Below, one piece after another: positions 1-56,699 of a DNA stretch of 64,000 bases (positions within the stretch are counted from its first letter, which is position 1; every line of letters begins with the position of its first letter). The notes under the pieces were generated by a model, which saw nothing but the letters and a program-made list of their open reading frames with translations, was not told the DNA's origin and made no database searches. Both the position numbers and the translations under genes were made by a program. Origin of the DNA: Octopus bimaculoides. Taxonomy: Eukaryota. The DNA lies in contig NC_069000.1 in NCBI RefSeq assembly GCF_001194135.2, forward strand, positions 7,331,559 through 7,395,558, given 5' to 3'.

Positions 1-39
1 ATGGCTTTTCTATATTCTACAATTTCTATATTATTACAG

Positions 40-237
40 GATTGTGTGAAACAGCAAGCTGTAAAATCCATTGTTATTGTTCGGAATATATCAAATGAAG
101 CAGCTTTAGAAATTGTGAATGAAGTCTTTGATAAATGCTACAATGATTTGGAACCTGTTGGCAGAATACCAAGGAAAGCTTCAAGGGATAATTATCGGGC
201 ACTTTTGGAAGGACAGTTATATGGCTATTCGGAATAA
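40..237 (+). CDS. ATP23: Mitochondrial inner membrane protease ATP23 homolog, last coding exon (gene begins upstream of window)
   Basis: Acceptor ttattacag at 38-39, phase-0 exon DCVKQQAVKSIVIVRNISNEAALEIVNEVFDKCYNDLEPVGRIPR...* resembles the recalled ATP23/XRCC6BP1 C-terminus ([43 protein letters not shown]); TAA at 235-237. Confidence 0.88.
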   Translation, partial: DCVKQQAVKSIVIVRNISNEAALEIVNEVFDKCYNDLEPVGRIPRKASRDNYRALLEGQLYGYSE

Positions 238-1425
238 CAATCAGAAAGAATTATTATTATTATTATTATTATTATTAAAATGAACATTGTGTTGAAATAT
301 TTTTATTATTATTTAATATCATTTATCACAAATATAGTTATTGATTTCTAATAAAATTCATGAACTAAGTTCAAGTTGCTTATCAAAAACTCAGGAAGTG
401 TGTGTGTGTGCGCATGTGTGCTCTTAACAAGAAGACTGACACTGCTGACTTTTTCATTTTGTTGAAGATTATAATTCAAACTGTTTAAAAACTGTAAGTT
501 TGTGTCATAGAGCCTGGAGTGGTATCAAAAGGGTTAAAATGTTTATCATAAACATGTTTGAGTGTAATGCTTTCAACAAGCATTACACTTGAAAGGATGT
601 TGGAAGCACATTTCTCAGTCTGTTACATTCTGTTGGGCCAGCTGTACATTGTCTTGACTTCCTGTTATAACTGACTGAAGAGACAATTAAAACTAATAAT
701 GTTTTAGTTATGTACAAAAATGTTCATTGTGTACAAATCATGTATCAGCTGTTAAAAAGTAGGACACTATCCAGTTTTTTGATATGTAAACCTGAAAATT
801 GTAATATTGGCATATATGCTATGGGTTTTTAATTCTGTTTTAATGTTAGAGTTAGGGAGTTGAATGCTGATTAGTTAATAGATGTGACACTCTTTAAAAA
901 CTACATATCTCTTTGCTTTGGGTTAAATGTATTTCATTTTTTTTTATACCTAGTTGAAATCACCTATATGTACTGATCACACATGTGACCTATACACCAA
1001 AAAAAAAACAACTTAAAATAGAATATTCTATATAAGTTCTCAGCTGGTAGCATTTTGGATATATGTACATTTGGATATATGTGCATGTATAGGGATGATC
1101 ACTAAGTGGACATCCCTTTTGCTAGAAGAAGACCACCTACAGTCTGACCACTAAGAAAAGATTGTTTTCAAGAAAATTCAGCAAACACCAGAACATAAGC
1201 AAGCAAGACAAATGAAAAGATACAAAATATAAAAAATTAATCATAGACTGGTTTCTTTATTAACTACTTGCATAATTACTTACGGAATTGTCTGCAACTC
1301 TTCAGTATGATCGTCCTTTGCAATATAATTTGCAGAACTATACACAAGACGTCCACATGAGATTGAACATGTATTTAGTTCTAAAAGTCTTTGTTTTTGC
1401 ACGCCAAATAGCTGGAATAATTTAA

Positions 1426-1474
<49 letters not shown>

Positions 1475-2029
1475 CATATAGATATTTACTCACACATATG
1501 TATGCATATATAAATGTGTGTGTGGTTTAGAAGTTTGCTTCATAGCCACATGCTTTAGTTCAGATAATCACTTCTGCATTTTTCTCACTTAGTAGAACAT
1601 ATTCCACTGAGGAGGTCCAATAAAACTGGAACATGACTGTTACATTCTGTTGGTCTTAAAGGCCAGATCCTCCACTCTGACGTCACTGTCTACATTCTAT
1701 AAAATTTCGAATTGGCTGATCTTTTGTATATTGCTTTTACATTTGAACACCTATACAGGGTATCATCATCTCGGAGCTTCCAAAATGAAGCTCTGACGAA
1801 GCTATAGGGTGATACACAAGCACTCAACTGAGGTGCAATCCGATGGTCAGTCATGACCGAAGAGGGGGTCAGCTCAGCATACAAACACACACACACACAC
1901 ACATGAAAAGGAGAGTGGAGATTTATTCACATCCAAAACATTTTATTAAAACAGTTTTGTACAGTATATATAACAATGACCAACATATGTTTCAACTGCA
2001 GCAATTACACTTTGCTTTGTATGCAATTA

Positions 2030-2170
2030 TACATCCAGTCACAAGGGGAGGGGGTCCAGTCGATTACATCGACCACAGTACGCAGCTTTACTTAATTTAT
2101 CGACCCCGAAAGGATGAAAGGCAAAGTCGACCTCGGCGGAATTTGAACTCAGAACGTAAAGACAGACGTC
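2030..2170 (-). mobile_element. tRNA-derived SINE fragment (abundant family A)
   Basis: tcgaccccgaaaggatgaaaggcaaagtcgacctcggcggaatttgaactcagaacgtaaagacagacg recurs near 5469-5580, 56870-57030 and 63083-63302; B-box GTTCAAATTCC on minus strand. Confidence 0.75.
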
Positions 2171-2469
2171 ATCATATATATATATCGGCACACACACGCT
2201 CAGCCTACCAAGCAGTGGTATTTAACCTCCGATACACAGAACTTGGTAAATTAAAGGAAGTTACGTGCGCAAATTCGTAGGAATGCAATTATGTTATAAT
2301 AGAAGACAGTTATTAAATCCTATTTTATGTCGATGTTGAACACCAGTATCCCCATTCCTATTACTTTAGTAAAATTCTTTTATATCAGGAATTATCAAGC
2401 CAGCCAAAATAGATTTCAATCTCTCTTATTTACAACTGACTTCTCTTTCACTTACTAAAGTACATCTTT

Positions 2470-2920
2470 TTTCAGTCACGTGCTCAGTATTGACCAATGA
2501 AAAAGCTTTACGTTGCTGAAGCTACAAGCTGGAGTGTAGTTTATTCCACACCATCCTTCTTCATTGTCCTCCCTCTCTCTTTATCTATCTATCTATCTAT
2601 TTATTTATAAACACACATACACATATGTACCACACTTCCTTCTCCATCTCACTCAATGTGTTCACTCACGCTGTCACCCTCTCACACTGCTCTTTACCTC
2701 ACTCATTCTGCTACTCTCTCTCTCACACTACCTCTTTCTCTCCCTCCCTCTCTCACTCAATCATTCACCACTCCCCTCTCACTTTGTCTTCATAAATTAT
2801 TAGTCACGGTTTCATTTCTTCGCTGTTACACCTTTATCTCTCCGCTCCGAAATTGTCAACTCAGGTAAGAAATGACACGATAATGTATAGCTGTCATTTT
2901 ATCCACGTCACTACAATTCC
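2470..2920 (+). promoter_or_regulatory. Putative DNAJB9 promoter / non-coding first exon with ER-stress elements
   Basis: GTCACGTG 2475-2482; CCAAT-N9-TTACG 2494-2512 (ERSE-like); donor CAG/GTAAGA at 2864/2865; CCACGTCA 2903-2910 (reverse UPRE); ACTACAATTCC 2910-2920 (ZNF143/SBS-type). Link to DNAJB9 is inferred from the unused acceptor at 7773-7774 just upstream of its ATG. Confidence 0.55.
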
Positions 2921-5900
2921 TACAGATTCTCCATTGCAGATCAAAAATCTTGCTAATTTCTTTGTTCTCTCCTTTTGTTTTTTTCTTCTTTACTCCCCGT
3001 TGAATTATTTTCCTGCTTTGTTTATAATTTCGTTTTGGTTCACCTACATATACATTTACCCTTATCGTCATCGACATTCCTTGCTGATCCACAACATATA
3101 TCCATACATCAAATATAGATACACACATACACATATGTGTGTGTTTTTGTGTGTATATAAATGCATGTCTGTATATATATATGTATGTGTATGCGGAAAC
3201 TAAACCTTTCTCCAGCCAACAAATAAAACATCAATGGACAAGGAACCTACTAATATATATTCAGTAGCTGATTAACACTACACACACACATGTATATGGG
3301 TGTATGTTTACGTGTATATATAAATGTAATGAGGCACAGCTATACGATTACCATTGAATGGCAGAAACGGGCATAAAGGACTGTCATTGAGAAACGTGTA
3401 TGTGTGTGTGTGTATGTACACATACGTAAATACCTACATTGATATACGAGCTCTGATACCGATTCATAGCTAATATCAAGTTCCTTTTTATTACATCATT
3501 ATTTTACATTCGACATCTTGATAGATACATTGGAGATATTTCAAACTAACAGATTCATTTTTAGTTTAAATTTCTGTGTGATTATTAAACATTTATTAAT
3601 CTTCCAATACTGTACGCACATACATACACATTTTAGTGTGTATAATATACTACGGAACTACTTGAAAAATATAACGGTATATTTATAATATATATGGTGT
3701 ATATGTATGTATAATATGTGTGTATTTAAATGTCTATAACGACTTTTTTGTAATGTAAATTTGTATGCAATTCTCCAACGAAATATAAGTCAGAAATATA
3801 ATTATTTTCGATTTTATTGGTTATGGAGACCAAACGATTAAAAGTCCTGAATTCTGAAAATAAACAAAGATTTGTGTTATCATCCATCGTTAAAGATTTC
3901 AACGCTGCCAAACAAGGAACAAGTATGTCCAAGAAATCACATTAGAATTATAGAATCACTTTAAAAATGGAAGGATGTGAAACCAATCGCATGAAAACAC
4001 GATATACATACATCATACACACTTAAAAATTTCACACACACACACAGAGGCAAGAGCTTCTTTATCAAAGAAGACACAACTGTTTCCAGTTTTATCTTTT
4101 CTGTAGACGATTTTTCTCATTTCCTCCTTTTAATCGTTTATTATTTACAATTTTAATCTCATAGTCACTGCGTCAATGATGTAATAGGGGAGGGTGTCTC
4201 ACAGCAGCCGGCATCAAACATGCTCCTCCACTTCAAACAGACACCGATGAGACGGAGAGGGATTTCTGTGTCCCCTCACACCTGCACCCAGCTGTGGCTA
4301 TCGCTGTTTCTCTCGATCCATCTCTTCCATATGTGTGTGTGTAAACATCTTTGATCAGACATTATATCAATAACTCTCCACTCTTTGTCAGTTTTGACAG
4401 TTTTATTATACTAGACTATATATCACAATATGTTGTTTGAGTGCTGCGGGGTGTCTTTTGAGGGAGATTTGGTGGTTGTTTCTACTATTTTGAATTATCA
4501 TGTTGATGTTCCTTAATTGATCTGAGTCTACGTACTCTAACACATGCAGGTATTCCGGCCCTTAGCTCCTTACATTCTGGTGATGTTGGTGTTGGGAGCT
4601 GGCTGCATCCAGGTCATGGACTCCTGAATACTCCTCCTCCTGCCATAGTCTGTACTGTTGTCTGCATTGCAGCCCTCCTGGATGGTTAAGGTGCCCCTCG
4701 TCCAAGGTGTCTTTAGTGTCGTAAACTGTTCAGTCGAAGACGCTTGTTGACTAGGCTAAATTATTCCTAAATTCACTTCCATTCCTCCTCTACCATATCC
4801 AGATGGAACTCTGGCCTAGAGTCGTCATATAGACGTTCCTTAATCGACCCAAGCGTACCAGCTCAAAGTTGACTCGCATTCAACTCGTGCAGGAACAATA
4901 CCAAAATGAATGAAACTACAGATGATGATCACCGTTGAAATGTTATTGGTCAAACGGTTCTACTGATTCAGAATAACTTGAGACTAACCACCAAGATGGA
5001 GCACTCATCGTTGTGTACTCTGAATATCTGGCTATTTTTATTGTGACATCCATGCCAATTGTTGTTGAAGCTTAGGTCAGCCCTGACCGAGCAGAACTTA
5101 TGATTAAATCTATTCCAACTGTGATCGTAGTAAAGGTATCAAGGTTATTCTATGCCTGAAGGAAAAGTACCCGAAGGTAGCGTTCTGCAATACTAAATAT
5201 ACGTTAAAGTGTCACATACATAATATAGAGAGTTGGAAAAAGAAACTTCAGTTAACTGACATTATCTTTGTAGTTTATTGACAAAGATTCCCTTTGAAGA
5301 TGTTTGAAAATCTGAAGTCAATAGGGAAGAGGGAGGACTCCAATATAGTGAATTCAAAATCTTTGTGTATGGTTGGGGGAAAAGTGAGGCAGATGAATTT
5401 GGTTTTTGAATTTATTTCAAAGGAGCTCAAACAATTCTTTCTACTATAGGCACAAAGTCTGAAATTTTGGTTAAAAGGGTGAAAGGCAAAGTTAACCTCG
5501 GTGGAATTTGAACTCGGAAAGTAAAGCTAGAAGAAATACTGCTAAACCTTTTGTCCGATTCTGCCATCACGCCGCTTTAAGGAACTCTGATAATAACTGA
5601 AACGTGTCCATAGTGTTCACCAGTTGTTTTTAAACACTGAACATCTGCATCAATTTTATATTACAAAAATCCCAGCTAATATTAACAGGTTTATTTCCCT
5701 TCTTTCTAAGATTTCAATACCTCTGAGGGAGTTTTTATCTCCTAAGCGCGTGGATAATTTCCGTTGATCGAATGTTTTCTCTAATTTAAAGGAGACTTGA
5801 CTGCTACTTCTAGCAAGGGGGAGAGGCAGCAGAAAAGTTTCTCCGTTGGATCGTCCCTTCCCAAGGTGTTAGTGTCTTTTATCAGTAAAATGTTTTGTTT

Positions 5901-7788
5901 TCATACGATGACTGACAACTGACTAGGTGGACAGTGTGTCACCTCCTTCGATGTCATCTGTCAAATCTTATGTCAGAAAAGACTTCAATTATGTCACCAC
6001 ATTTCTCAAGTACAATTCACTTTCTGATATCATTAAAATTTCTTCGTATTTTTTTTCATCCCCCCCCCCTAAAAATCACAAAGTGTTATTAAACCTTTCG
6101 ACGAGTTTTCGCATTATGTACATATAATGGTGGCCAACAAATTAGTTGACAAAGCGCTATATAATAAACCATACTCTTCATTATGTAAATCCCAACGATG
6201 CAACTACGTTCATACAGTAACATACAAACAAACAAAAAAAGGGCACGAAGTTTCATGGAAAATAAACATTGTGCCATACATGCAACTTCTCACAATCTCT
6301 TCTCTACTTCCCTGTCGTCATTTCCACAAATATAAGCCATGGGTGATCTTTATATGAAATGAAATTATAGTTTACCAGTTTTTTATGGTTCAGCACCTGT
6401 CTTCCTTTCAGTCTGCTTCTGTGTCCATTAACGAAAGACTGCCTACCTTTTATTAACCTCCTAATTCTTTTTCTCTTCTTGTCACTGAGATTCCGCTGTT
6501 TATCATTATTGTTTTAATCTCTCGGTGTAAATTACAAGTTTATGTCCCAGATATTACGTCACCACCAGAAGACGAAGCACAATATGGTACAGACTATATC
6601 GCTATCTAGTTTTATTCGATTCCTGGTCCCACTAGGATAAAAAAGCATTCCATCCATTACCAACTATCCAATTTTCTTAAAAACTTTTTAACGAATTTCT
6701 CTCAGACATTGTATTTTTTTTACAATAGGCATTGTATTTTTTTAACTCGTAAAGTACAATACGGTGGGATTTGGTTGCTATTTCTAGCAGATTTGACCAC
6801 ATAGAGACCTACTTTTTAGTTTGCTGTAAAGTATTAGCAGCATCCTGTCTGTGATCACCTAGCCATATGTCAAGAGCATGATATTACGTAGATTACACGA
6901 TCCAATTTATAATTCTTTTTTAGACAGTTGGGTGTGACATGAAATTTGACCTGTAGGTCAAGTGTCTCTGTCGAGTCACTGTAATTTGTGTTAGTATGAT
7001 GATTACTATGGTGATTCTTGCTTATCCTGAATCCATGACCATCTTCACTTTATTTTTGACAGTATATCAAGGATTAGGGTGTCCTTCCTTCTTATATGAA
7101 TAAGGTGTGATTGACAGAAACTTTGGCTGTTATTTTTAGCAGGCTGGTTGACTATTTAGAAGCTTCCTTGACTTCTAACAGAGACCGAAGACAATAGTTG
7201 ATAAGTTTGGCTCCATGGGTTGGCAGAATCGTTACAGTGTTAGTCTTATGGTTTTTATCCAATTTCATAGATTTTGAGTTCAAATCCTGTCAAAGCCAAT
7301 TTTGCCTTTTGTACCTCCTGGGTCAATGAGAATAAAGTACCAGTCATGTACTGAGGTTGACGTCAATTAACTCTCTCCTTCACGACTTTTCCTTGTGCCT
7401 CCATTAGAAAGACTTGTATTAGTGGTATTTATCTTGTCAATCCTGGTGGCACCAAAATTATATTGTTTCATTTAGGACTCACCTGTCATTGAAAGATTCA
7501 GAACAGTTTTATCTTTTTCTTGTTTCAATTACTGGACTGCATCCATGCTGGAGCATTGCCTTGAAGGATTTTCCTTAAACAAATCAACCTCAGTACTTAT
7601 TCTTTGAAGTCTGGTACTTATGCTTTAGGTCTCTTTTGCCAAACCACCAAGTTACAAGGACATAAACAAACCAACACTGTTGTCAAGCAATTTACTTCTC
7701 TGTACTGTTTAAGGAAGAACCATTAAAATCTGATTTAGCTTTTAATACCTGTTCCTTTTTTATTTTATTTTCAGATCAAAGTGTAAAA

Positions 7789-9661
7789 ATGTATTTTAAC
7801 AAAATGCTACTCTTCACTGCTCTGTCAAGCGTTCTTGTACAGGAGGTCATATCATTTGAGGCAAACAGAGATCTGTATGAAATACTTGGCACAAAACGAG
7901 GAGCTTCTCAAAAGACAATTAGGAGTGCCTTTAGAAAATTAGCCCTAAAATATCACCCAGATAAAAATAAAGATAACCCTGAGGCTGAAAAAAAATTTGT
8001 AGAAATTAGTAAAGGTAAGGATTATTCATTTATTTATTTATTTATTTTTTTTTTTTGGTTATTTACCATAACCCTCTTGCATTCAGATTACTCTGTCATA
8101 TGTTATGCTTATTTAATCTCATTGTTTCGGATTAATCATGCATTATCTCACAGCTTTGAGATGTGAACAATATGATTGTGTATTTTTAGAATGACAGTGT
8201 GAGATAGGTGTAAGAGGCTGGATCTGGCCAGTTCGAACATAAAACAGGTAGAATATTTGGGCTGGGTATGGCTGGTTTAAATGTTAAGGAGTTAAATTAA
8301 TCCTAATAACTCTGTAAGTAATCTCTCTCTCTCCTCCTCCTCCTCGCCCACTCTCTCTCTCTTCTTTCCTCTTTTATTGGATTGTAGGGGCCTTATTGAA
8401 AGCAGTCATTATGGAACGTATCCAAGACAGATTAATCTAATGGGAATTTTTTTTAAATGGTTCTTGATAAGTAGAAAGACAGAGTCCAAGTGTTATGTTG
8501 GTGAATGAGACTTTACCAATTGGTCAGGTGGCTTTTTTTCTGGTGGTGGTCAAGCTTTGTCCATGAAAGAAATTAACTCAGCTCATGATAATATCACACA
8601 GTCAGATTTATTGTGCTGAGTTGCTGCTACCTTGTGGCATCTGTTTACAGCTACAGGAGGGTCAGCAACAGGAAGGGCATCCAGCCATAGAAAATCTGGA
8701 TCAACAAATTCTGTCTAACCCATGTCAGCATAGAAAAGTGGCATTAAAATGATGACAACAATGAATAACATTATATAGTGATGTGGAAGAAGACAATATT
8801 AACTTCAATAAGAATCGATTAAAAATTGTTGTTTAAAGAAATATATACATTTTTTGTTTTGTTTTTTTTTTAAATTTGAAAATGTTTTTTTTTAATTATT
8901 TCTTCCAATTTTTCTTTTAAAGCTTATGAAATCTTGTCAAACAACGAGAAGAAGGAACGTTACGACAAATTCGGCGACACAGGTGATAGCCAGGATGACT
9001 TCTCTCATGGAACACATTCTTTTAATTTTGAAGACTTGTTTGGATCCAGCTTTGATAATTTCTTCTCATCCAGTCATCGCAGCAGTCAGAATTCCCAGGG
9101 AAGAGGTGGAGGGGGACAGTACATAAAAATTAACGACGACGATTCTTTCTTCAGATTTGATGATTTTTTTGGTGATAGTGATGACAACGATGATTTTTTC
9201 AGTTTTGATCATTTTGAAGATTTTTTTGAACAACCTCATGCTAAATATAGTGGACATATGAACAGCTTTTTTAGTTCATCGCATTCATCAGGTAAGTAAA
9301 ACAAATTTTCTTGTAAATAACAAATAACTTTTAGAAAATGTTTTAATTTAGCAGACCTGAATATAGTAAAAAAACAAAATTGTAGATAAAATTATTGGTT
9401 TAGGAGTTCAGTTATTACATAGATGGTGGAAAGGGGAAGAAAAACTGTACAAATATAATAGTAATAGATTTATCATTGTTGCTTTAACATCCATTAAAAC
9501 TGTCAGTGAAACTATTGGCATTATTTCATGCCATGTGTGCTAATTATTCAATATCTTAATCCATGTAATTTCATATTAAATTTGCTTCAGGTGGTCAGAA
9601 ATGTCGGACAGTTACCCAGAGAATCGGAAATATGATGACAACTCGGACAGAATGTTCATAA
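7789..9661 (+). CDS. DNAJB9: DnaJ homolog subfamily B member 9 (ERdj4/MDG1), 221 aa; exons 7789-8014, 8923-9291, 9591-9661
   Basis: Hydrophobic N-terminal signal, J-domain with HPD (RDLYEILG...[43 protein letters not shown]), G/F-rich region, C-terminal [20 protein letters not shown] typical of DNAJB9. Both introns GT-AG, phase 1; CDS 226+369+71=666 nt. Confidence 0.93.
8068..8295. mobile_element. TTAA-flanked MITE (piggyBac-like), degenerate copy in DNAJB9 intron
   Basis: Same body as copies at 26588, 29993, 47652, 47938 and 62529 (tagcattcagatt...tttagaatgacattg...gaacataaaacaggtagaatatttgggc...tttaaatgctaaagggttaa). Confidence 0.65.
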
Positions 9662-9699
9662 CTATAAAACACTTTTTCTATTTGGGATGAAGTATACTT

Positions 9700-10130
9700 T
9701 TAAATTTATTGACATTTGATATATATATATATAACGATTTTATATATATAAACAAACATACATACATTCAACTGAATATTTTATATATGTGTGTATTTGT
9801 ACTTTATATATATATATGATATATATATATATATATATGAATGATATGATATATATCATATATATATGATATATATCATATATATATATATATATATAAT
9901 ATATATTATATATATCATATATATATATATGATAATATTATATATATCATATGATATATATATATGATATATATATATATGATACATATGTGATATATAT
10001 GTATATATATATAAACATTTATGGGCACACACATGTATGCATGTATATGAAATATATGTGCATATATATATATGCATATATATATGCACATGTATATATG
10101 CATACACGCACACACATATATATTTGTATT
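9700..10130. repeat. Long (AT)n/(ATATG)n low-complexity tract
   Basis: Near-continuous alternating AT with CA/TG interruptions directly after the DNAJB9 stop. Confidence 0.9.
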
Positions 10131-11188
10131 TTCTTTTATTGTTTTACTGGTTTCAGTCATTGGACTGTGACTATGCTGAAATATTTTCTGAAGTGTTTAG
10201 TCAACCATAAAGATCCCCAGGACTTAGGTTTTGCTCTAAACTTCAACGATTGGCAAAACTGCTGTTTTAATTCAACACTGGTCTTGTTTCAAGCACTGGA
10301 GTTGTGTCAAGTGTAGAAATGAAGGAGGACACACACACACATAGATACATATATACACACGTGTGTATGTGTATACATATATATATATATGTATAAATTC
10401 CTTTCAACTTATCACTGAGTGTATGGTTGACTGAAGAGCTACATCTAAATGAAACTATTTCAGCTTTGTTGATCTTTCTATATCTTTTATAAATTAATGC
10501 ATTATTATATATATATATATATATATATGTGTGTATGTGTGTATTTATATACATACATATATGCACATATTAAATGTGTGCATGTGTGTATCGATCAGTG
10601 TGTTTTCTAATTTTCTTTTGAGAAATTATTTTATCTCAGTTTCAAAAAAATATGAAGTAACATTGCAAAGTTGTTTAATGGGTCAACTACTTTTTCATTC
10701 ACTGCTTTCTACAATTTATATTAAAATAAATGATGAGATGGGAGGAGGGGACAGGGCATATCGTGGTGTATAGGGACAGACAAACAGGCATTGATAAACA
10801 AACGAACCAATCTTTAAACACCATTCCCTTTTATTGGACTATAAACTTTATCTGTTGTAACGTGTGTCTTTCTATTAACCCTTTTATTAATCCCTACAGT
10901 TGTTTGCTGTCTTCAGGTGCCACAGTTATATAATGGCAGTCAACATAGAAGAGAGAGTGAGAGAACTCTGTGGAAACCAGTTCCTGTTGCTGGTTACTCC
11001 ACTTTTGTGTTACCTCATTTGGGAACGCCATGAATGCTACAACCTCACATTTCCTTTTTATTTAAATCTTCATACTTGTGTAAATAGATTTCACCAGTTA
11101 TTGAACTGGTCCTGTGTACATTATCACAATCTGCAGAGTTTGGTACTAGACTGCACAATGCTGTTTTTATAAAAACAACTACCCTGGC

Positions 11189-11230
<42 letters not shown>

Positions 11231-11451
11231 CATACATGAATGCATACATTGTATTTGTGTTGGCTGAAACTTTGTTTTGCCTCATGGCTAATTCAACCGA
11301 TCAAATCCCAATCAACACAAACTTTACAACAGGTTTGACTCTGAGTCCCCCCCCACGCCCTTCCTCCATCAGTAAATTATTTCTGTTATTCTTAAACTAA
11401 CTTTAAAATAATAACCTCAACTTCACACACACACACATATATATATATTTA

Positions 11452-11716
11452 GAAGGTTGTTTGTTATGGCCAGTCAAAGAGTGACCGTTAGTTTCACACC
11501 TATAAAGGTGCTTAGCTGTATAGGTGACTCATCAAACTCAAATGGCCCGCAGCATATAACTTCTCTACAACTGACCATGAGATTTTCCTCCCTCCAATTG
11601 AAAGGGGGTTATGTGCCTTTGGCCATTTAAGTGTGAACAAGTTGCCTATACAGCTAAGCACCTTACAGGTGTGAAACCAGTGGTCACTCTCTGACCAGCC
11701 ATAACAAACAACCTTC
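11452..11716. mobile_element. Fold-back MITE with about 85-bp inverted arms
   Basis: Left gaaggttgtttgttatggccagtcaaagagtgacc...gtttcacacctataaaggtgcttagctgtatagg pairs with right cctatacagctaagcaccttacaggtgtgaaacc...ggtcactctctgaccagccataacaaacaaccttc. Confidence 0.8.
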
Positions 11717-11787
11717 AAACTATTACTACTCTAATGTTTTAGAGTGTACTTCTTTTTTGGATATATGTACTGACACACACATACGTG

Positions 11788-11826
<39 letters not shown>

Positions 11827-12298
11827 CATATATATATATATATATACATACACACACATGTATACACACATATGTGTAAACTTGTGATGCTTGAAGATTA
11901 TTGAAAAACACAATTAGCAAAATACTGTGGAGCTAAATGAGGTAATATTGGTGTGATGAAGTTTTGTATTAAACTAGAACCACTAATTAATCTCTGGCAT
12001 AGACCATGTGCGATGATACCACAGTTTATTAGTATTGTTTCAAGGATAGAACTGCTGTGTGTTACCTGTATTTTTGGCCATCGAATTAGTGAAATTGAGA
12101 TTAAAAGAGACTGTGTGATGTTGGGGGTTTGTTACTGAATATTCTAAGATTACTAACCAATTCCTTTGCCTCACCTTGGAAATCTAAACATACAATAATT
12201 GATTCATAAATTCTTCAGTTCAGTTCTAGATTTTTTATTATGGTATCACAAATTTGATTTTTTTTTATCTTTTTTTTTTTAAACTATCAAATGTCTTT

Positions 12299-12329
<31 letters not shown>

Positions 12330-12711
12330 TCATGAGATTTTTACAAAGTTAATTACATGCTTTAACTCTGTGTAAGAAATTAACTAGAAAAATATTTGAT
12401 TTTTTTCCCCCTTATTATAATACACAAGCTTTAAATTATATTTAAAAGAACCTTCACCCAACAAAAACCAACCAGGTACTTTAGTATCTTGTTGTCTCTC
12501 CTGATGTTAATATTAAACAAATGAAAACTGAATTGAGCAGAACCATTGCTGATCAATTGATTTGTATACTGTGATAAAAGAATGTATATTTGTAAATAAA
12601 TTTTTCCAAAATCTTTATTGACTTTGCTTAATACTAATTAATATAAGATTTCAACTACTTCCTCCTTTATTGTCTCTAGCTGCAGTAGAAAGAAGTGTTG
12701 GAACCAGATGA

Positions 12712-13060
<349 letters not shown>

Positions 13061-13080
13061 ATATTTCACCAACAATAAAC

Positions 13081-13250
13081 AGGCACAGGAGTGGCTGTGT
13101 GGTAAGTAGCTTGCTTACCAACCACATGGCCTTGGGTTCAGTCCTACTGTGTGGCACCTTGGGCAAGTGTCTTCTACTATAGCTTCAGGCCGACCAAAGC
13201 CTTGTGAGTGAATTTGGTAGATGGAAACTGAAAGAAGCCTGTCATATATA
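13081..13250 (+). mobile_element. tRNA-derived SINE family B (CORE-like body)
   Basis: tRNA-like head, then caccttgggcaagtgtcttctactatagc...gccgaccaaagccttgtgagtg...gtagatggaaactgaaagaagcc; related copies near 32590-32760 (-), 45620-45700, 55820-55920 and 58620-58652. Confidence 0.7.
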
Positions 13251-14606
13251 TATTACAAGTGCTAGATGAGAAAGTAGAGACTCTGTAGTAAAGCCACCTC
13301 CCTCTTTAACCCAATCCTGTTGAAGAGGATATTAGTCTTGCAAGATGCATGGTAACCTCACTGTTAGTGCCATGAATAAAAGCATTCAGCACATTACTTT
13401 ATAAAGTGGTTGCTATTAGAGAGTATCCAGCCACACAAATCATGTCAAAGCAAACATTGGAGCACAATACAATTTTCACATCCACTGGATCCTATTAAAC
13501 CACTCAGAATATGCCATCATGAAACGTGAACACTAAAAGATGACGATGTATGGACTTCTTTCAGTATCTATCAAACCCTACTCAGAACTATAGAAGAAAT
13601 TTGGCCAAGGTATTGTACAGTGAGACTGAACATGAAATCATATGGTTGGGAAGTGAACTTCTTAACCATAAAACCACAAATATAAAATAAAACATGATTC
13701 ATGAAAACAAAAACATTACATAAAAGGAAGTAAATTAATCAAAGTAAGAAATACTACAGGAATTGAAGTGAAAAAAAATGATGCCATCTCTTTTTACAAT
13801 TTATTCATAGAAATTTTGTTTTTTGTAACCTCAGAGAACAGTGAGATTACTAGGCAGTTTGTTTTTATAATTATATTAATAATAATAATAGTAACACTAA
13901 AAATAACTCCCTTACTGGGACTTTGAAGAGGACCAAATAAATACTGAAGGATGCTGGGAAGAGTAGGAAACATGGGTAGACACAGCTCTCAGTTATTCCA
14001 GGAATTCTGGACCATATAAATCAGTCTGTAGAAAGGAGTCAACATCTATATTCAACATATTTCCAAATTTCTATCTCCACTGACTGTCAGAGAAGATTTC
14101 ACAAATGGATTTAGTTCTTAACTTCTTCCATAACATGTTCTTTCTTACAAAGTTCATATATGTATACATACACCCGCATTATGTATATATATATTTTATC
14201 CATTACATATACATATATGTATATATATCATACAATAAATAAGGATATATTTTAAATATACATATATATTATATATACATATATATATACTAAATGTAGA
14301 TATAAATTTTTATACACTATATTCATTCTTACATTTGATATTCTACATATATACATTTATATACTACAAAAACGTGTATATATAATTATATATATACATA
14401 TATGTTATATATTTTTGTATATTCATATGGATAACTTGAATATAAATATATCTATACACACACATATATATATATATGCATATGCAAATATATATATATA
14501 TATATACACACATGTATGCATACACACACATATATATACATATGCTTTTATGTGTGTGTATGAGTTTATACATTGTGTATGTGTGTGTGTATATATATAT
14601 ATATAC

Positions 14607-14641
<35 letters not shown>

Positions 14642-15525
14642 AACATGCACACACACATGTACATTTAGAATAAAAGCTGAACTTTCATATGTAGCTCATA
14701 CTAATTATTCAAGAGCTGTTTCATTAACATAAACACTAAATGTATAATTATCTAATTGTTAGACATAATTTAAATCAAAATAATGTAATAACCTATGTTA
14801 ACTCAAATCATGAATATTATGTGTTATGTTAATCAGAAAATATAATGCATAATATTCCTGATGATTTAGTTAATTACAACTTTTAAACTAATTCAATTTT
14901 TTTCATTATGTAACAAGATTATGTAATTATACATTTAATGATGTTTATCTTAAGAAAACAGCTGTTGAGCACAAGGTATGAACTGCATGTGAAATTTATG
15001 CTTTTCAGCATTTTATTCTAAATATGTTGCTCTTAAAGATTGTTTTTAGCTGATTATGAATATACATGCAAGTCGGTCCCACTTGGATTTACTGCAATGC
15101 AGTAATGTGTTGAAGTTTAACATCCTTTCATTTATTGAGTTCTTAATGACTCTGGATTATTTTTTTTACATTTATACAGCAAGTCTCTCTCTTGCTCTCT
15201 CTACATATGTGTTTATATACATATATAAATACATACATNNNNNNNNNNNNNNNNNNNNNNNNNNNNNNNNNNNNNNNNNNNNNNNNNNNNNNNNNNNNNN
15301 NNNNNNNNNNNNNNNNNNNNNNNNNNNNNNNNNNNNNNNNNNNNNNNNNNNNNNNNNNNNNNNNNNNNNNNNNNNNNNNNNNNNNNNNNNNNNNNNNNNN
15401 NNNNNNNNNNNNNNNNNNNNNNNNNNNNNNNNNNNNNNNNNNNNNNNNNNNNNNNNNNNNNNNNNNNNNNNNNNNNNNNNNNNNNNNNNNNNNNNNNNNN
15501 NNNNNNNNNNNNNNNNNNNNNNNNN

Positions 15526-15609
<84 letters not shown>

Positions 15610-16300
15610 TTGTACATACAGACATGTATGTGTGTGTGTGTATTTTTATTATTCTTTAACAAGAATAGTATTGACAGTGACTTCGAAGTATCAGCCAGCT
15701 AAGACATCATCACACTTTAATACATATAAACAGATATACATGTATATATATGTGTGTTTGCACATGTGTGTGTGCATAATGATACATATATACACACGCA
15801 TACTCTTAATTACTGAATTTTTTTATTCTCTTGTTTATTCTACCAGACCCACATATATATGTATATATACACACACACACACCCATATATACAAAATTTG
15901 ACACACACACACACACACACATACAAAGTATGTGAACAAATGAAAGAAAGTAGAACTCTCAACACATTCACTTAGAGTTTTTAAGTATTTAATGCCAGTT
16001 TGACTTAGCTCCACATTAGAAGTTTCACAGGCACAGCAGGTATGCTATCTACATATTCTGAGGATATAGGAACATATCTGCGCCTACGAAATGCTAAGTG
16101 ACATGGAGTTGAATCAACCTGTCATTAAAATCATATATTTTTATCATATATTAAATTTATATATTATGTATTACACACACACACACACATATATAATCAT
16201 GTTTGTATACATGTGTGTGTATGTATGTGTATGTGTGTATGTGTGTGTGTGTGTTTACATGAGTAAAGAATGTGAAGGAATTCAGCCTCTGTGTTTTGGC

Positions 16301-40529
<24,229 letters not shown>

Positions 40530-40538
<9 letters not shown>

Positions 40539-40560
40539 CTTGCTCATGACGTGTAACAGT
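40530..40560 (-). promoter_or_regulatory. TBC1D23 start region: AAGATGGCG (YY1/Kozak-type) and TGACGTG core
   Basis: Minus strand reads acacgtcATGagcaagATGGCG; TGACGTGT on plus strand at 40547-40554. Confidence 0.5.
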
Positions 40561-40696
40561 TGAACGGTTTGAGGCATTCGTTAAATATTCCGTCCAACTT
40601 TTAAACTAACGCGAACATAAACAAACTAGTCACACATACACCAACAACAACAACAGTGGCAACTGATGGCTGTGTTGTAATCATTATTTTTATTAA

Positions 40697-41544
40697 GGGG
40701 AGTGGATGGTAGAATTGGTAGAGGGTCGGACAATAAGGATTTGCAGTATTTAGTCGCGTTCCTTTACGTTCTGAGTTCAAATCACGATGAGGGTGCCTTT
40801 TTTCTGTCATCCATCCTGGGTCGATAAAATTATTAACCAGTCATATAACAGAATCGATATAATCGATTATACATTTTCTTCCCAAATTTTCCTGGCCTTG
40901 AGCCCATATTGGAAATGAGGATTAGCTGAATCGTTTGAGCGTCGGACAAAAATGTCTTGCGGAATATAGTTACGGTTCTGGGTTCAAATCTTGCTAAGGT
41001 CGATTTTGCCTTTCATCCTTTTGGGGTCGATAAAATATGTACCAGTCAAACGCTAGGGTCAATATAATCGACTTACCCGCTCCCCAAAAATTGCGGGGGC
41101 CTTCTGCCAAAATTTGAAATTATTATTATTGTTAAGGCAGTGAGTTGGCAGAATTGTTAACACGCTGGACAAAATGCTAAGCGGCATTTCATCCGTTCTG
41201 AGTTCAAATTCCACTGAGATCGGCTTTGCCTTTCGTAATTTTGGGGTCCATAAAATAAGTACCAGCTGAGTACTGGAGTCAATGTAATTGACTAACGCCC
41301 TTCCTCCAAATTTCAGGCCTTATGCCTATAGTGGAAAGGATTATTATTATTATCATTATTATTATTATCATTAAAGCTGTGAGCTGGCAGAATCGTTAGT
41401 GCGCTGGGCAAAATGCCTGGCAGCATTTAGTCTGTCCTTATATACTGAGTTCAAGTTACACCCAGGTCGACTTTGCCTTTCAGCCAATGTAATCGACTTA
41501 ACTCCTCCCATCAAATTTCAGGACTTGTGTCTATAGTAGAAAAG

Positions 41545-41589
<45 letters not shown>

Positions 41590-41635
41590 GTAATCGACTT
41601 ACCTCCTCCACCAAACTTTGTGCCAAAATTGGAAT
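40697..41635 (+). mobile_element. Head-to-tail array of about 5 SINE family A copies
   Basis: Copies at about 40697, 40916, 41135, 41372 and a fragment at 41585; the four larger copies have a gttcaa B-box and body, and the later ones are separated by (ATT)n tails. Confidence 0.8.
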
Positions 41636-41999
41636 GTAATACATATGACCTTTACTTGTTAAGATTCTTTGTCCCAAACTCTGTTTTTGGGTCATCCAAG
41701 TTCAGCTGATATGTCTATACCATGAATTCATGACCTTGGGCATTGCTGCCTTGAGTTCTGACTCATAAGGCCAGTTATTTGGCTTCCATGGTGTGTCCAT
41801 CACAGGGTTACTTATTTACAGTTTGGTGAACTGGAACAACATGAAATGAAGTGTTTTGCTCAAGAACACAATACACCACCTAGTCGAAGAATCAAAACCA
41901 TGATTGCAAGATTATGAGCACCATATCCTAACCACTAGGCTATGTGCCTTCAAAATCATAAAGGCAGAAAAAAAATGGTGATTTTTGGAATTCAGATGG

Positions 42000-42785
42000 G
42001 AAAAGCTCTTCATGATATTACAACAGCATCAGAACTCTGATAAAATCCAGTCTGAAACAGCAATTAAAATCTCACATTAAAAATCAAGTGGAAGGATTGC
42101 CAGTACTTGTTGGCTGGTGTCCAAGAACCCCAGAAACCTTCAATTCTTGAGATGTTGTTGCACAGTACCACACCATTTTGGCTGCTTCTCCTGAACCAAC
42201 TGGATGACCCTTATTATTATAAGTTCAATATTGCTTTCTTCATATGCCAAATACATTCATTGTCCAGTTTGTTTCATTCAGCAACAATATCCTCACTGCA
42301 GCTAGTTATTGATTCACTTGCTTCATAACTCAATGAAGAAGATTACAACATCTTTGCCAGTCTTAAATCACAGCAGAATTTATCCCCAGACAGCAAAGAA
42401 GACATGAACGTTTGCAGACAATAGTGATAGAAACGATTTTGTGTCATTCATACTTTAATGTAAAAGACCCTGTCTTATGCTTTGCTTGAGTTATTTCTCC
42501 TTTTGTTATTGATGCCATGACAAAAAGAAACTTGTTCTGAATATCATTTGAATGGAAAAAAATATGAATTCTGTAGATGAGGTCAGAACAGTACTGGTGG
42601 AGTATTTTTCATTACAGACAAGTGAATTTTGGAAGAGGGGCCTTGCAAGTCTACCAGATAGATGGAAGAGCATTGTAGAAAATGAAGGAGAGTATATTTT
42701 AGATTAAAAAAGAACTGTATTTATCTTAATTTTGAAAAATAAAAGAGGTATTAAAAATGCATTATTTATGAGATGACCCAACATA
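42000..42785 (+). mobile_element. Decayed mariner transposon (C-terminal transposase and right end)
   Basis: 42564-42707 reads MNSVDEVRTVLVEYFSLQTSEFWKRGLASLPDRWKSIVENEGEYILD*, the typical mariner C-terminus (GI..LP.RW..V...G.Y), followed by a TIR-like attatttatgagatgacccaa. Left boundary uncertain. Confidence 0.75.
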
Positions 42786-42929
42786 TTTTTAATCTTAGCA
42801 GCACCTTCACACAGAACTGCATTTATGTACAGCCATTTCATATTAATCAAGGCTAAATTATTTAGATGATCTTGTTCCATAGTTGCAGGAACTGCAACAA
42901 GGTTGAGGTTACAGACTTCATCAATTTAT

Positions 42930-43560
42930 TAATTCTGGATATCCTGCAAAGAGGATATAGCACACAGTTTAATACTGTACAGAAATAAAGGATTGGCAAT
43001 CTCAAGTGATATGAATGGACACATCGTAGATAAGCTCAGGAAGAATTGTATAATCATTTTCAAAGAATGCCACTTGGATATAACTGTTATCAGTGAGGTC
43101 AACTTCCTGATTTCACCTGAAACTTCAAGACCGACAAATACTATCCCCACAGTAGACCTAATGAAAAAAAACTGTTTGTACCCATAGGAACCCCAACCAC
43201 TTCCAGTTGTAAGTAGAAATGTAGACATATCCATCAGCAGAAGAATTTTCAATTCATTGTCAGACAGAAAGATCTCTAAGAGGGTCACATCCCTATTAAA
43301 ATGAGGCATCAGCAAGGAGTGGCTTTATTATAATTGAATGGATATGAAAGATTTCCCACCTCATCTAATCCCAAAGAGAGTTAGAAAGAGAAAGGTAACT
43401 TGGTTCAATCCTCTATGCAATCTAGATGTATCCACTTATGTAGATAGAAGTTTCCTGTCTCATCTCTAATAAGGCAACATTTCCAGAGTACACATAAGTA
43501 TCATAAACTTTTTAATGCACATAACATTAATGATAGCTACTTATGCTTAGATGATATTGC
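42930..43560 (+). mobile_element. Decayed Penelope-like retroelement fragment
   Basis: DKLRKNCIIIFKECHLDITVISEVNFL and, with frameshifts, KVTWFNPL...HKYHKLFNAHNINDSY, resembling Penelope RT and linker (IIWFNPP...HKIFNRNTVKVSYSC). Confidence 0.7.
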
Positions 43561-44769
43561 TTCCATTATTATGTACTACTAAAACACAAACATGTAACCA
43601 AGCAGACACCATCCCATATACTAAGCTGAAAGTTTACCAACAACCCACTGGGAGAATCCACCAACAGGTAAACTGATCTACAGCAATGTTGCACAAAAGA
43701 TATGCCCTATTAATGAACTTCAAACCATTGGCCACTGACACCCTAGAAAGACCATCTGATTCCTGAATAGTCATGTTCTGCATAAACAGTCTCAGCTTGC
43801 TGACAATGAGATTATTTCCCTTTTGCATTCCACCATTGCAACCATGCAGTGCCCAGTTACAATTATACGACGTACAGTTATGCATAACACACAAACTGGT
43901 ATGACACCACTAGATTAGATACCCATGTTGGCATGGAACATGGATTTTAAATAAAGATGGTATAGATGATAATGTATGTATGAATGTATCATCATCATCA
44001 TCATTTAACATCTGTTTTCCATGCTGGCATGTGTTGGACAGTCTGATTGAAAACTGGTAAGCTGGGGAGCTGCACCAGGTTTCAATCTGATTTGGCATGG
44101 TTTCTACAGCTGGATGCCCTTTCTAATGCCAACCACTCCAAGAGTGTAATGGGTGCTTTTTACATGCCACTGGCACGGGTGCCAGTTACGAAACACCAGC
44201 ATCAGCCACAACTACGATCGCACTTGGCTTCACAGGTCTTCTCAAGCACGGCATATTACCAACTGTCTCGGTCATTTGTCACTGCCTCAATGAGGCCCGC
44301 GCCTGCTTTAAAATTTGAAAGTATGATCCCTAAGTTTCATTCGATTTAACTAACACAATTTCTCATTCCATTAAATCGGTTTAATGTATTTTAATGGAAT
44401 AAAATGGGTTATTTTTTTTACTTGCTTTTGCATATAGTGTACAACTAATGTATTACCAGTTAGTGACTAAAAGTATGATTCGTTTAATTACTGTAGTTTT
44501 TATTAATGGTATTATTATTATTTTTCTTAACTAAAAACTGACTCAGAAATGACAGCAATTTTGTCGACGTTGACAGTACTCCCGATTTACCTCCCTTGGA
44601 GTAAAAATAACAAAAACAGAAAAAAGAAATGAAATGCTAACTCAGTTGTAGTTTTCGTAACAAAAAGGAAATTGCAATTCATCTCTTCGACGAAAAACAA
44701 ACATACAGTTAATGTTAAAATATTATAAACAAAACATCAGTTTAATAAAAATTTCAACATATAACGTAA

Positions 44770-44931
44770 ATATTGAAAGAGCTCACTTTCGTCGCCGACC
44801 CTTCGTATTCAATTCATTGACGTGGCTTCCGCCATAATAGCACTATATGTCTTGAGATCTGAGCCAAGACACAGAATACTGGAATTGTCTGGCTCTTTGT
44901 TGTCATTGTTTTCTCCTTATAAACAACAATG
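44770..44931 (+). promoter_or_regulatory. ARCN1 core promoter / first exon region
   Basis: CpG-containing stretch with TGACGTGG at 44818-44825 followed by CTTCCG (ETS-like) and CGCCAT (YY1-like), about 105 bp upstream of ATG/GTAAGT. Confidence 0.6.
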
Positions 44932-46563
44932 GTAAGTACAGCAACTGAATAAATGTCTTGTTTTTCTACAGTTGTCATTTAAAGCTAAACTTCCTAAGTT
45001 CCTCTAAACAAAAGCCTATCATTATATTTCACCTCTTGTCACTCGATGTGCTAACGTTGATAACTTATTCATAGATTTCTCTATCAAATTTCACCAAATA
45101 TCTTCAAAAATTCTACAGGTATTTTATAAAAAAATTTCACTTTGAATCATTTAAAAGACATATATATTTCTTTAAAAATATTCAAAATTTCGTATCATTT
45201 GATAAATGTAGTCTATCCGAAATATGTTTTTCCTGTCCACACCTCTCGCAACCACTCACAAAGTTGCCTACATCAGCTTTATTTCAATGTCCTTTTTTTT
45301 TTTTTTTTTTAAATGTCTATCTCTATGTCTCAATATTATTTATCTTTGCATTTTATTATATGCATGTGATTACGTGTTTAACAACGTTGGTTTGTCCCCA
45401 TCTATATATATCGATATTTATACTATACAAGCACATTACTCATTTATATATATACACGCACACACCCAGATATTTATATAAGAATACATGTATTCATACA
45501 AATGTGTGTATACTTATGTATTCATATGATATAAATAATATTGTATTATGAGTTTGTTGTCTTTTTCTGGAGTTCCATTACCTAGATCAGAGTAATAATT
45601 GTCTAGTAAAGATTTCGCAATCCTGGTTTTGGGTTCATTCACACTGCTCGGCAACCGCGTCGAGCAAGTGTTTTCTACTATAGCCTTGAGCGGAAATCAA
45701 ACGAATGTTGTTATATGTGTGTGTGTGTGTGTCCTCATCTTAACATCACACTTTAATTGTAAACAAAAGTTACTGTCATACAAGTGGTATCATTCGTTTG
45801 AAATCCTTCACGAAAACATAACCGGCCATTGTGCCGTTTGTGTCCAAAAAGCTTTGGGAAATATCCTCTTGCTTGGAAACAGATCAACAAACTAGAAAAT
45901 CTGCCTCAATATATCTCGTCTGACCCGACGTTCAAACGACAATGATGATGGTATACACACATACATACACACACGTTTATATGAATATATCATCATCGCG
46001 TTTGACGGAATTTGTCAAAGCAGATTTTCTATGACCGGATGCTCTTGCTGTTGCCAATCCTCGTCAGTTTACAAGCAAGATAATACTCACCCCAGTCTTT
46101 TTAAACAGTACGATGGCTGGATGACTTATTTATGTGGAAGATTGCAAATGAAGGCCACTACTTTTGTGATAGCAAAGATTGTTTTGCAGTTGGTGTGTAA
46201 TGGGGAAAACAAGGAGACATAGCCACATGATAATATTTTCCGCTTCGCCTATGTTTTCATGCAAAACTGCAAACAAACATCATTGTGTGTATGATAGCGA
46301 AGTCGTTGATTACAATTAGTGAGGAGTGTTAAGACACTAGTTTCTGTTTCTCTCTACCAAATTTGCCCACACAACTTTGTTCAACCTGGGGCTATAACAA
46401 GACACTTGCCCAAATTGCCATACAGTGAGACTGAACCTAAAATCGCATGGTTGAGAAGCAAACTTCTAAACCACACATCCATGCATGCACTTATTCATAC
46501 ACCTATATATATGTGTGTGTATATATATATGTATGTATGTGTATATGTATGTGTGTGTGTGTT

Positions 46564-46614
<51 letters not shown>

Positions 46615-49600: not shown

Positions 49601-50804
49601 TAAGCTTTTAGGCAATAGCTTGTTGATTCAGTCTTTTAGGCAATAGCTTGTTGAGCCAAGCTTTTAGGCAATAATGTGTTGATCCAAGTAATCAGGTAAT
49701 AGCTTGTTGGCTCAGCCTTTGATGTACAAGCTTATCAATAAAAATTTTCAGTTACTAATTTGTCACTCCAAGTATTCAGCCAATACATTGCTTATCCAAG
49801 CTTTGAGGTAACAGCTTGTTTATATAAGCTTTAAACTGGCAACTTTTTGGCGCATGATTTGAGTAGCTGAGCCAATGTTTAAAAAATAATAGTTTATTGA
49901 TTTGAGCTTGAAGACATTATTTGAATTTGCTGAAGTGGTTTCTGTTTGTTACATAAAACAAAGGTCCATCCTTGATGATCTAAAGTTTATTTCAATTTCT
50001 CTATAATATAAAAATTTCATGTAGGAGGTTTTAGTGTGTATTTTTATTACAGGGTTTGAGAGATGAGTGAGACAATAGCTGTGAGGCCATAGTACAAATC
50101 AGATCATTGTGTTTTGCCTCTGAACAAGACACCTAACTCTGTTTGCTCCAGTTTATTTGACTGAACATAAAACAGGTTCTCCTCGAACTTCAGAAGTTGA
50201 GGGCTCAGTGCCGAAAAGATATCTCCTGGATTTTAAAACTATTGCTCTTAAAGTGCATTTGTTTCGCTTTTATAAATCTATGACAAGTTTTTCTATTCAT
50301 GTGTGCTATTATTTCTTATAATACTGCTCATGTACACTAGGTGCAGATGTAGATTGCAAATTGAATCTGATAACTTTGACCAGGATACAGAAAGTGTCTG
50401 GATGAGTGGAGATTACTTAGACTTGTACTGTCCAGCCCCCACCATCACTAGTACCACTATCACTATTGCAGTAGATGTCCTTCTTTATCATGTAAATACA
50501 TTCAATGTAGCTGCCTTACTAACATCACTTTCAATTTAGATCCCTTATTAAACACTCCTATCCAGCCCTTATTTTCTGAAGCTACAACCCTTTGGAACTC
50601 ATTCATTACCTATATTTTCACTCCTGTCAATGATTTGACATGTAACATTACGAACTAAATGACAACCTACATAATTCTGTCTAACCCTTTCTCTCCTACC
50701 TTAGGTTTTATGTCCCCTTTATGTTGTCTCCTTTAGGTTGTCTCCTGTTCTCTTTTTCAGCTCCTGTCTTCTTTCTTCTTTGGCTTTGTTTGCTATTCCC
50801 CCAC

Positions 50805-50841
<37 letters not shown>

Positions 50842-56198: not shown

Positions 56199-56237
<39 letters not shown>

Positions 56238-56651: not shown

Positions 56652-56699
<48 letters not shown>

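Follow-up and report, generated by a model that had tools for sequence, protein, structure and literature searches.

TGACGTG Motifs near the First Exons of DNAJB9, TBC1D23 and ARCN1 of Octopus bimaculoides: Probably Ordinary bZIP Promoter Motifs Rather than a Regulon

The window studied here is a 64,000 bp stretch of the Octopus bimaculoides genome with a GC-content of 36.1%, which matches CM046620.1 (GCA_001194135.2; locus label L001) with 100% identity. Along it lie, in order, the 3′ end of ATP23, DNAJB9 (+), TBC1D23 (−) and ARCN1 (+, continuing past the window end), and a copy of the heptamer TGACGTG occurs near the predicted 5′ end of each of the last three genes. A first-pass annotation of the sequence took these copies for sites of the unfolded protein response element (UPRE) or CREB3-family type and the three genes for a compact, co-regulated unit of secretory capacity. 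The question that the locus raises is whether the copies are functional promoter sites, which class of factors would bind them and whether the adjacency of the genes has any part in their regulation. The answer that we consider probable is that ordinary promoter motifs for basic leucine zipper (bZIP) factors, of the UPRE or cAMP response element (CRE) class, are situated at orthologues of XBP1/CrebA targets; the DNAJB9 copy is a non-conserved intronic match, and a regulon cluster of these genes is not supported.

The UPRE has the sequence TGACGTGG/A, the endoplasmic reticulum (ER) stress response element (ERSE) has the sequence CCAAT-N9-CCACG, and Dnajb9 is a target of XBP1s (PMC8301375). Factors of the CREB3 family recognise CRE, box-B, ERSE-II and UPRE (PMC3116243). 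The assignment of TGACGTG(G) to UPRE/CREB3-family sites and of DNAJB9 to the XBP1s targets, both made by the first-pass annotation, agrees with these sources. The Drosophila factor CrebA acts on promoter-proximal consensus sites to switch on secretory-machinery genes directly, those of COPI among them (PMC3003312), and TBC1D23 is among the CrebA-bound secretory-pathway genes (bioRxiv 10.1101/2025.06.12.659381, section 22). Orthologues of all three genes are, in the literature, documented targets of the XBP1 or CrebA/CREB3L programmes, and a single bZIP programme serving all three would be biologically reasonable.

Occurrence of TGACGTG and Chance Expectation

TGACGTG is found at five positions in the window: 2904 (−), 31376 (+), 40547 (+), 44818 (+) and 63810 (−). 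This number is not above chance (2.81 copies expected; 12 of 100 shuffles reach 5), and the annotation had itself conceded that the count was unremarkable. Its coordinates for the three copies near gene starts (2903–2910, 40547–40554 and 44818–44825) are exact, and the offsets that it gave hold: 2903 is 39 nt past the donor CAG/GTAAGA (2864/2865), 44825 is 105 nt before the ATG at 44930, and 40547 is the A of an ATG. As background it had listed the copy at 63810, which is indeed present, and had overlooked the one at 31376. The former adjoins a (CA)n tract within an intron of ARCN1, the latter is located in the CpG-poor intron 2 of TBC1D23, and both look like background. The three copies near gene starts are as follows.

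2903..2910, − strand: DNAJB9 UPRE-type match TGACGTGG (CCACGTCA on the + strand), in intron 1, at a distance of 39 nt from the putative donor
40547..40553, + strand: TBC1D23 copy, TGACGTG followed by T (TGACGTGT), situated within the annotated N-terminal extension; the gene strand reads CACGTCA and then TG
44818..44826, + strand: ARCN1 site TGACGTGGC, UPRE/CREB3-type, 105 nt upstream of the ATG, with the 8-mer TGACGTGG at 44818–44825

The UPRE consensus TGACGTG[G/A], taken from PMC8301375, fits only two of the five copies, those of DNAJB9 (2903–2910, −) and ARCN1 (44818–44825, +). The remaining three, including that of TBC1D23, are TGACGTGT and deviate from the consensus. By sequence, the proposal of a UPRE-type site at all three genes agrees with DNAJB9 and ARCN1 and not with TBC1D23. 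As for the placement at all three first exons, the copies of ARCN1 and TBC1D23 are situated in predicted promoter DNA, but the DNAJB9 copy is intronic.

The ratio of observed to expected CpG is 0.03–0.3 in the gene bodies and near 1 at 2.0–3.5 kb, 38–41 kb and 44.2–46 kb; therefore, any CpG-containing word gathers near the gene starts. Chance was modelled with a first-order Markov chain fitted to the 5′ window of each gene. Under this model, TGACGTG is expected in 3–8% of composition-matched promoter windows each, and multiplying the chances of the three windows gives 7e-5 to 2e-4. Among CpG 7-mers, CACGTCA alone is common to all three narrow windows; the share of simulations with at least one CpG 7-mer common to all three goes from 3% with narrow to 24% with wide windows. 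The windows were drawn after the motif positions had been seen, which biases these chance figures, and the positional signal is notable only if the motif counts as chosen beforehand.

Promoters of ARCN1 and TBC1D23

Judged by its letters and by the predicted gene start, the ARCN1 site is the best of the three both as a match to the UPRE/CREB3 class and in placement. It abuts CTTCCG (ETS-like) and GCCAT (YY1 core), the ACGTGGC that it contains is unique in the window, and the local ratio of observed to expected CpG is ~1.2–1.9. Through a factor akin to XBP1 or CREB3, TGACGTGGC could plausibly couple the transcription of delta-COP to the secretory load, in the way seen in flies and mammals. A protein search with a very conserved ARCN1 exon as the query returned exon fragments from many animals, none of them clearly cephalopod; a long ENA contig (L005) ended short of exons 1–2.

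On the gene strand, the 5′ end of TBC1D23 reads ...TTA CAC GTC ATG AGC AAG ATG GCG CAG..., and the heptamer falls in the annotated coding sequence (codons L-H-V-M), 9 nt upstream of the conserved start codon. The TBC1D23 protein starts with MAEAVEY in Sepia, which corresponds to octopus Met14, and with MSKMAQ, three codons earlier, in Argonauta. This makes the ATG at 40538–40536 the conserved start codon. This codon is part of a second motif, situated 5 nt from the heptamer.

40533..40541, − strand: AAGATGGCG, a YY1/Kozak-type core-promoter motif, the sole exact match in the window, containing the ATG 40538–40536

In the stretch 40536–40577, the RefSeq model of TBC1D23 begins 13 codons (MPQTVQLLHVMSK) before the Met shared with Sepia and 10 codons before the Argonauta-type start. 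The annotated N-terminal extension is probably 5′ untranslated region (UTR). A block of repeats resembling short interspersed nuclear elements (SINEs) begins ~130 bp further upstream of the heptamer. Taken together, the 5′ end of TBC1D23 looks like a compact housekeeping core promoter with a CRE-like half-site and not a UPRE 8-mer; as part of the 5′ UTR, TGACGTGT would be a half-site of a generic CRE-like type and a weaker one.

The predicted core promoters of this head-to-head housekeeping pair are CpG-normal, with a ratio of observed to expected CpG of ~1 at 40.4–41.0 kb and 44.2–44.9 kb, against 0.1–0.3 in gene bodies. The two copies that they contain, beside the YY1-like AAGATGGCG, the ETS-like CTTCCG and GCCAT, would most likely be ordinary bZIP binding sites of the CRE/ATF/CREB3 class. 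A protein search with TBC1D23 found no cephalopod protein among the best 120 matches, and there was no TGACGTG on the Bugula TBC1D23 contig, where the gene model is truncated. As an anecdotal parallel, the ant Lasius niger (L008 7533–7585) has two GCACGTGGC motifs 35 bp apart, ~430–460 bp upstream of the TBC1D23 ATG, with a AAAGATGGCGAC motif further downstream.

DNAJB9 Upstream Region

The first-pass annotation had proposed an exon upstream of the DNAJB9 coding region, and the comparison with Argonauta hians supports it. A splice acceptor stands immediately before the ATG exon in both octopods (7774/7775 in O. bimaculoides); an upstream non-coding exon therefore exists. The region from the ATP23 stop to DNAJB9 exon 2 (7.5 kb in Octopus) was compared with its counterpart of 6.3 kb in Argonauta. 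The best ungapped match, which was also the sole conserved non-coding element found in this comparison, directly precedes the putative exon.

2474..2516, + strand: conserved DNAJB9 promoter block, 33/43 identities with Argonauta L002 5454–5496
2520..2864, + strand: putative first exon of DNAJB9, non-coding and C/T-rich, with a predicted start and the donor CAG/GTAAGA at its end

In 40 null simulations the best match peaked at 29 identities, against 33 for this block. In both octopods the block is situated ~2 kb beyond ATP23, directly before a long C/T-rich tract. It consists of GTCACGTG (2475–2482), TTGACCAAT with CCAAT at 2494–2498, a spacer of nine nucleotides and TTACGTTGC; in short, GTCACGTG is followed by CCAAT-N9-NNACGTTGC. 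The pattern across both octopods is AGTCACGTG-N8-TTGACCAAT-N9-(TT/CG)ACGTTGC. The arrangement resembles ERSE in that CCAAT is followed after exactly 9 nt by an ACG(T) core (CCAAT-N9-TTACG at 2494–2512 in Octopus, CCAAT-N9-CGACG in Argonauta). It differs in that the CCACG half-site is absent and ACGTTGC is conserved instead; only its layout makes the block ERSE-like. Between ATP23 and DNAJB9, neither octopod has an exact ERSE or ERSE-II. The E-box-like GTCACGTG, the CCAAT box and the ACGT-core element 9 nt later may form a stress-responsive element, and as such an element of the DNAJB9 promoter the block seems a likelier candidate than the copy at 2903.

The latter copy is located ~390 bp downstream of the block. 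The idea that it is part of a transposon was ruled out, the region having no repeat copy elsewhere in the window. Loss of the motif in related species had been named by the annotation as a finding that would count against its proposal, and no copy of TGACGTG occurs in any part of the 22.5 kb Argonauta hians locus (L002). The DNAJB9 copy appears to be either a lineage-specific site derived from turnover or a chance match.

Other ACGT-core sites occur upstream of DNAJB9 in molluscs. Argonauta has GGACGTCA (TGACGTCC on the other strand) a few nucleotides upstream of the block. Upstream of the gene, Solemya carries ACGTCA-N6-CACGTCACGT, and Pinctada carries ACGTCA...TGACGTCAC and then CCAAT. In Batillaria attramentaria (L007 7688–7800), TGACGTCA, TGACGTCC, AGTCACGTGGC and ATTGG are found within ~110 bp, at most 320 bp from the DNAJB9 ATG; GTCACGTGGC with a nearby ATTGG is also present upstream of the gene, and the AGTCACGTG core is common to this region and the octopod block. 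Given such sites in Argonauta, Pinctada, Solemya and Batillaria, bZIP-type control of DNAJB9 looks ancient, with its sites turning over.

Gene Layout and Synteny

TBC1D23 and ARCN1 are divergent, as the annotation had described, and the first exons of both are held by one gap-free stretch (39669–58652), so their head-to-head layout is real. Their start codons are 4.35 kb apart (40577 to 44930), beyond the limit for a bidirectional pair (<~1 kb). Much of the DNA between them is derived from repeats, as identified with self-BLAST against the rest of the window.

40712..44276, no strand: largely repeat-derived spacer between the two promoters, with tandem SINE-like copies at 40712–41578 and dispersed repeats at 41817–41952 and 43988–44276

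At least 1.3 kb of the spacer has copies elsewhere in the window. Given the 4.35 kb distance and the largely repeat-derived spacer, the promoters of TBC1D23 and ARCN1 are separate today. DNAJB9 stands tail to tail with TBC1D23, and their promoters are 38 kb apart.

The ATP23–DNAJB9–TBC1D23(−) order is identical in Argonauta. The neighbours of DNAJB9 are different in the bivalves Pinctada and Solemya and in the gastropod Batillaria, and TBC1D23 is not adjacent to it in Pinctada and Solemya; the order ATP23–DNAJB9–TBC1D23 is kept in Argonauta but absent from these three molluscs. The adjacency of the three genes is probably octopod-lineage synteny. Since each gene has its own promoter, a regulatory role of the adjacency is not supported. 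Among the rows listed in the microsynteny tables of Schmidbaur et al. 2022 (PMC9023564), no row for these genes was found.

Two further features of the region were observed. SINE-like dispersed repeats are also present at 2045–2168, ~35756–35913, ~47596–47651 and ~63394–63437, and one SINE-like family occurs in the Argonauta locus as well, with ~70–94% identity over short stretches. The segment 41950–43980 between the SINE blocks contains stop-ridden fragments of open reading frames (ORFs) and may be a decayed transposable element. In Pinctada imbricata (L003 5673–10001) and Solemya velum (L004 7950–10001), cereblon (LON_substr_bdg + Yippee) is head to head with DNAJB9; this divergent pair is conserved in both bivalves and is not present in the octopods.

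Comparison with Known Regulatory Systems

The exact 8-mers at 2903–2910 (−) and 44818–44825 (+) are shared with the known UPRE, and DNAJB9 and ARCN1 belong to classes of genes regulated by XBP1s, ATF6 and CREB3-family factors in mammals and flies. The differences are that the TBC1D23 copy is TGACGTGT, that the DNAJB9 copy, which is located in an intron, has no counterpart in Argonauta, and that the octopus sites are known from sequence alone. With respect to the promoter-proximal placement of UPRE, and by predicted starts, the three copies fall 105 nt before the ATG (ARCN1), in the annotated coding sequence or 5′ UTR (TBC1D23) and in intron 1 (DNAJB9).

In the CrebA/CREB3L programme, many unlinked secretory-machinery genes, among them those for COPI, COPII, the signal recognition particle and fly TBC1D23 carry promoter-proximal bZIP sites with an ACGTG core. 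The ACGTGGC of ARCN1 and the two GCACGTGGC motifs of the ant TBC1D23 fit this pattern. Its genes are dispersed, and the programme does not involve their clustering. Bidirectional housekeeping promoters with CRE, ETS, YY1 and NF-Y motifs are a further likeness: TBC1D23 and ARCN1 are divergent and have CpG-normal 5′ ends with CRE-, YY1- and ETS-like motifs. Here the difference lies in the distance, which is 4.35 kb rather than <1 kb, and in a spacer that consists largely of repeats.

Evaluation of Alternative Explanations

The model of the first-pass annotation comprises three functional UPRE/CREB3-type sites and a co-regulated secretory-capacity unit built by cephalopod rearrangement, in which one divergent promoter region serves both TBC1D23 and ARCN1. 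It draws on the three orthologues being targets of XBP1 or CrebA/CREB3L elsewhere (PMC8301375, PMC3003312, 10.1101/2025.06.12.659381), on the three 5′ regions having no other CpG 7-mer in common, with P ~1e-4 if the motif is specified beforehand, and on a DNAJB9–TBC1D23 order that is found in Argonauta and not in other molluscs. Moreover, leaving the repeats aside, <1 kb of unique DNA separates the starts of TBC1D23 and ARCN1. However, one site is intronic and absent in Argonauta, another deviates from the consensus and is transcribed, distances of 38 kb and 4.35 kb separate the promoters, and by our own estimate ~1 such triple per genome would arise by chance if ~2–5% of genes are secretory. 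Genes with a common transcription factor need not adjoin. With these distances, the tail-to-tail arrangement of DNAJB9 and TBC1D23 and the other neighbours of DNAJB9 in other molluscs, the notion of a compact regulon finds no support, and we regard the model as a whole as quite unlikely. Still more doubtful is a joint domain, in which cephalopod reshuffling would have juxtaposed three ancestral XBP1/CREB3-like targets in shared chromatin and UPRE-type sites would drive their joint up-regulation in secretory tissue or under ER stress. If true, it would represent lineage-specific functional microsynteny for secretory capacity, and the clustering would bear on models of regulatory microsynteny specific to cephalopods; at present, it is unsupported.

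Pure coincidence, with three non-functional CpG heptamers found near gene starts only since CpG survives there in a CpG-depleted genome, is unlikely, although several observations agree with it. The window-wide count is not above expectation, four of the five copies fall in 1-kb bins with CpG well above that of the gene bodies, some shared CpG 7-mer arises in 3–24% of simulations, the DNAJB9 site is not conserved, and two further copies (31376 and 63810) are evidently background. Yet the expectation per window is merely 3–8% with local composition taken into account, and no copy is found in a further ~7 kb where CpG exceeds the background, in the first introns of DNAJB9, TBC1D23 and ARCN1. The ARCN1 site extends to the 9-mer TGACGTGGC in a dense cluster of motifs, and related sites are present at orthologous promoters of other invertebrates (Batillaria DNAJB9 and Lasius niger TBC1D23). 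The sites could also be real and belong to another factor class, namely cAMP/ATF1/CREB or ACGTG-core basic helix-loop-helix (bHLH) and bHLH-PAS factors (USF/Max/TFE or HIF-type), with a spurious link to ER stress. CRE-like motifs are standard in housekeeping promoters. TGACGTG includes both the CRE half-site (TGACG) and the RCGTG core, the element conserved at DNAJB9 is the E-box-like GTCACGTG and no UPRE, and the CrebA-associated motif is reported to be similar to the Max E-box motif (10.1101/2025.06.12.659381). Against this, two of the three sites are exact 8-mers of UPRE, and what all three genes do accords with the XBP1/CREB3 programme. Another factor class seems very improbable.

The reading of ordinary CRE/UPRE-class bZIP motifs at separate genes has points against it as well. 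The shared 7-mer becomes only marginal (3–24%) with a full look-elsewhere correction, and the null reflects the composition of three local windows, not the frequency of TGACGTG over octopus promoters at large. The comparison for conservation covered the DNAJB9 site, and support for the TBC1D23 and ARCN1 sites comes from the O. bimaculoides sequence by itself. Site turnover could leave the DNAJB9 intronic copy functional though it is missing in Argonauta. The transcription starts used are predicted ones, that of DNAJB9 exon 1 being a guess. The binding factor and any response to stress are inferred, and so is the stress role of the DNAJB9 block, because the CCACG half of ERSE is missing.

If the ARCN1 site, and perhaps that of TBC1D23, is functional, the CREB3/XBP1–secretory link of flies and vertebrates would extend to cephalopods, which is expected and not surprising. 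The more useful by-product is the octopod DNAJB9 block at 2474–2516, a candidate molluscan ER-stress element with an ERSE-like layout and a different half-site.

Gene Models and Assembly Gaps

The gene identities given by the first-pass annotation are right: DNAJB9 and TBC1D23 correspond to XP_014770334.1 and XP_014770335.1, and ARCN1 was recognised by its match to coatomer delta exons. The models used are as follows.

1..237, + strand: last coding exon of ATP23 (Peptidase_M76); the L001 gene call ends at locus position 2449, which is window position 237; 79% versus Argonauta L002 3444–3642
7789..9661, + strand: DNAJB9 coding region, exons 7789–8014, 8923–9291 and 9591–9661; the spliced translation equals P0001 / XP_014770334.1 exactly
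16301..40577, − strand: TBC1D23 coding region of 16 exons, first exon 40507–40577 and last exon 16301–16577, from tblastn anchors and GT-AG splice sites
44930..44932, + strand: putative ARCN1 start codon, the last codon of exon 1 (ATG/GTAAGT), placed by donor, CpG profile and phase
55182–55221, + strand: ARCN1 exon 2; exon 3 begins near 57196, and the translations match coatomer delta

The last exon of ATP23 sets the upstream limit of the DNAJB9 upstream region. ARCN1 exon 1 must supply a Met in phase 0, because exon 2 is without an in-frame ATG. The rebuilt TBC1D23 product (687 aa) is identical to XP_014770335.1, whose protein cluster includes orthologues from O. sinensis, O. vulgaris, Argonauta and Sepia. 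It is collinear from end to end with the orthologues of Argonauta (92%) and Sepia (89%), with no block missing; the assembly gaps therefore hide no coding exon. The idea that the gaps conceal TBC1D23 exons or split the gene was ruled out by this collinearity.

The window contains nine runs of N, which fall only in introns and intergenic DNA, and the lengths of introns that span them are estimates only. DNAJB9 and its upstream region are held by the gap-free stretch 1–15238. The gaps at 15239–15525, 28398–28502, 37119–37128, 38368–38670 and 39406–39668 have TA-type dinucleotide repeats on both flanks, visible as YIYIYI runs in ORF translations, and look like unresolved microsatellites, not lost unique sequence. 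An Rfam scan of the window gave no match. The RefSeq isoform X2 of TBC1D23 (587 aa; window 19650–19770, protein P0369) diverges after ...INYSCL, inside the penultimate coding exon, and is without the C-terminal TBC1D23_C region.

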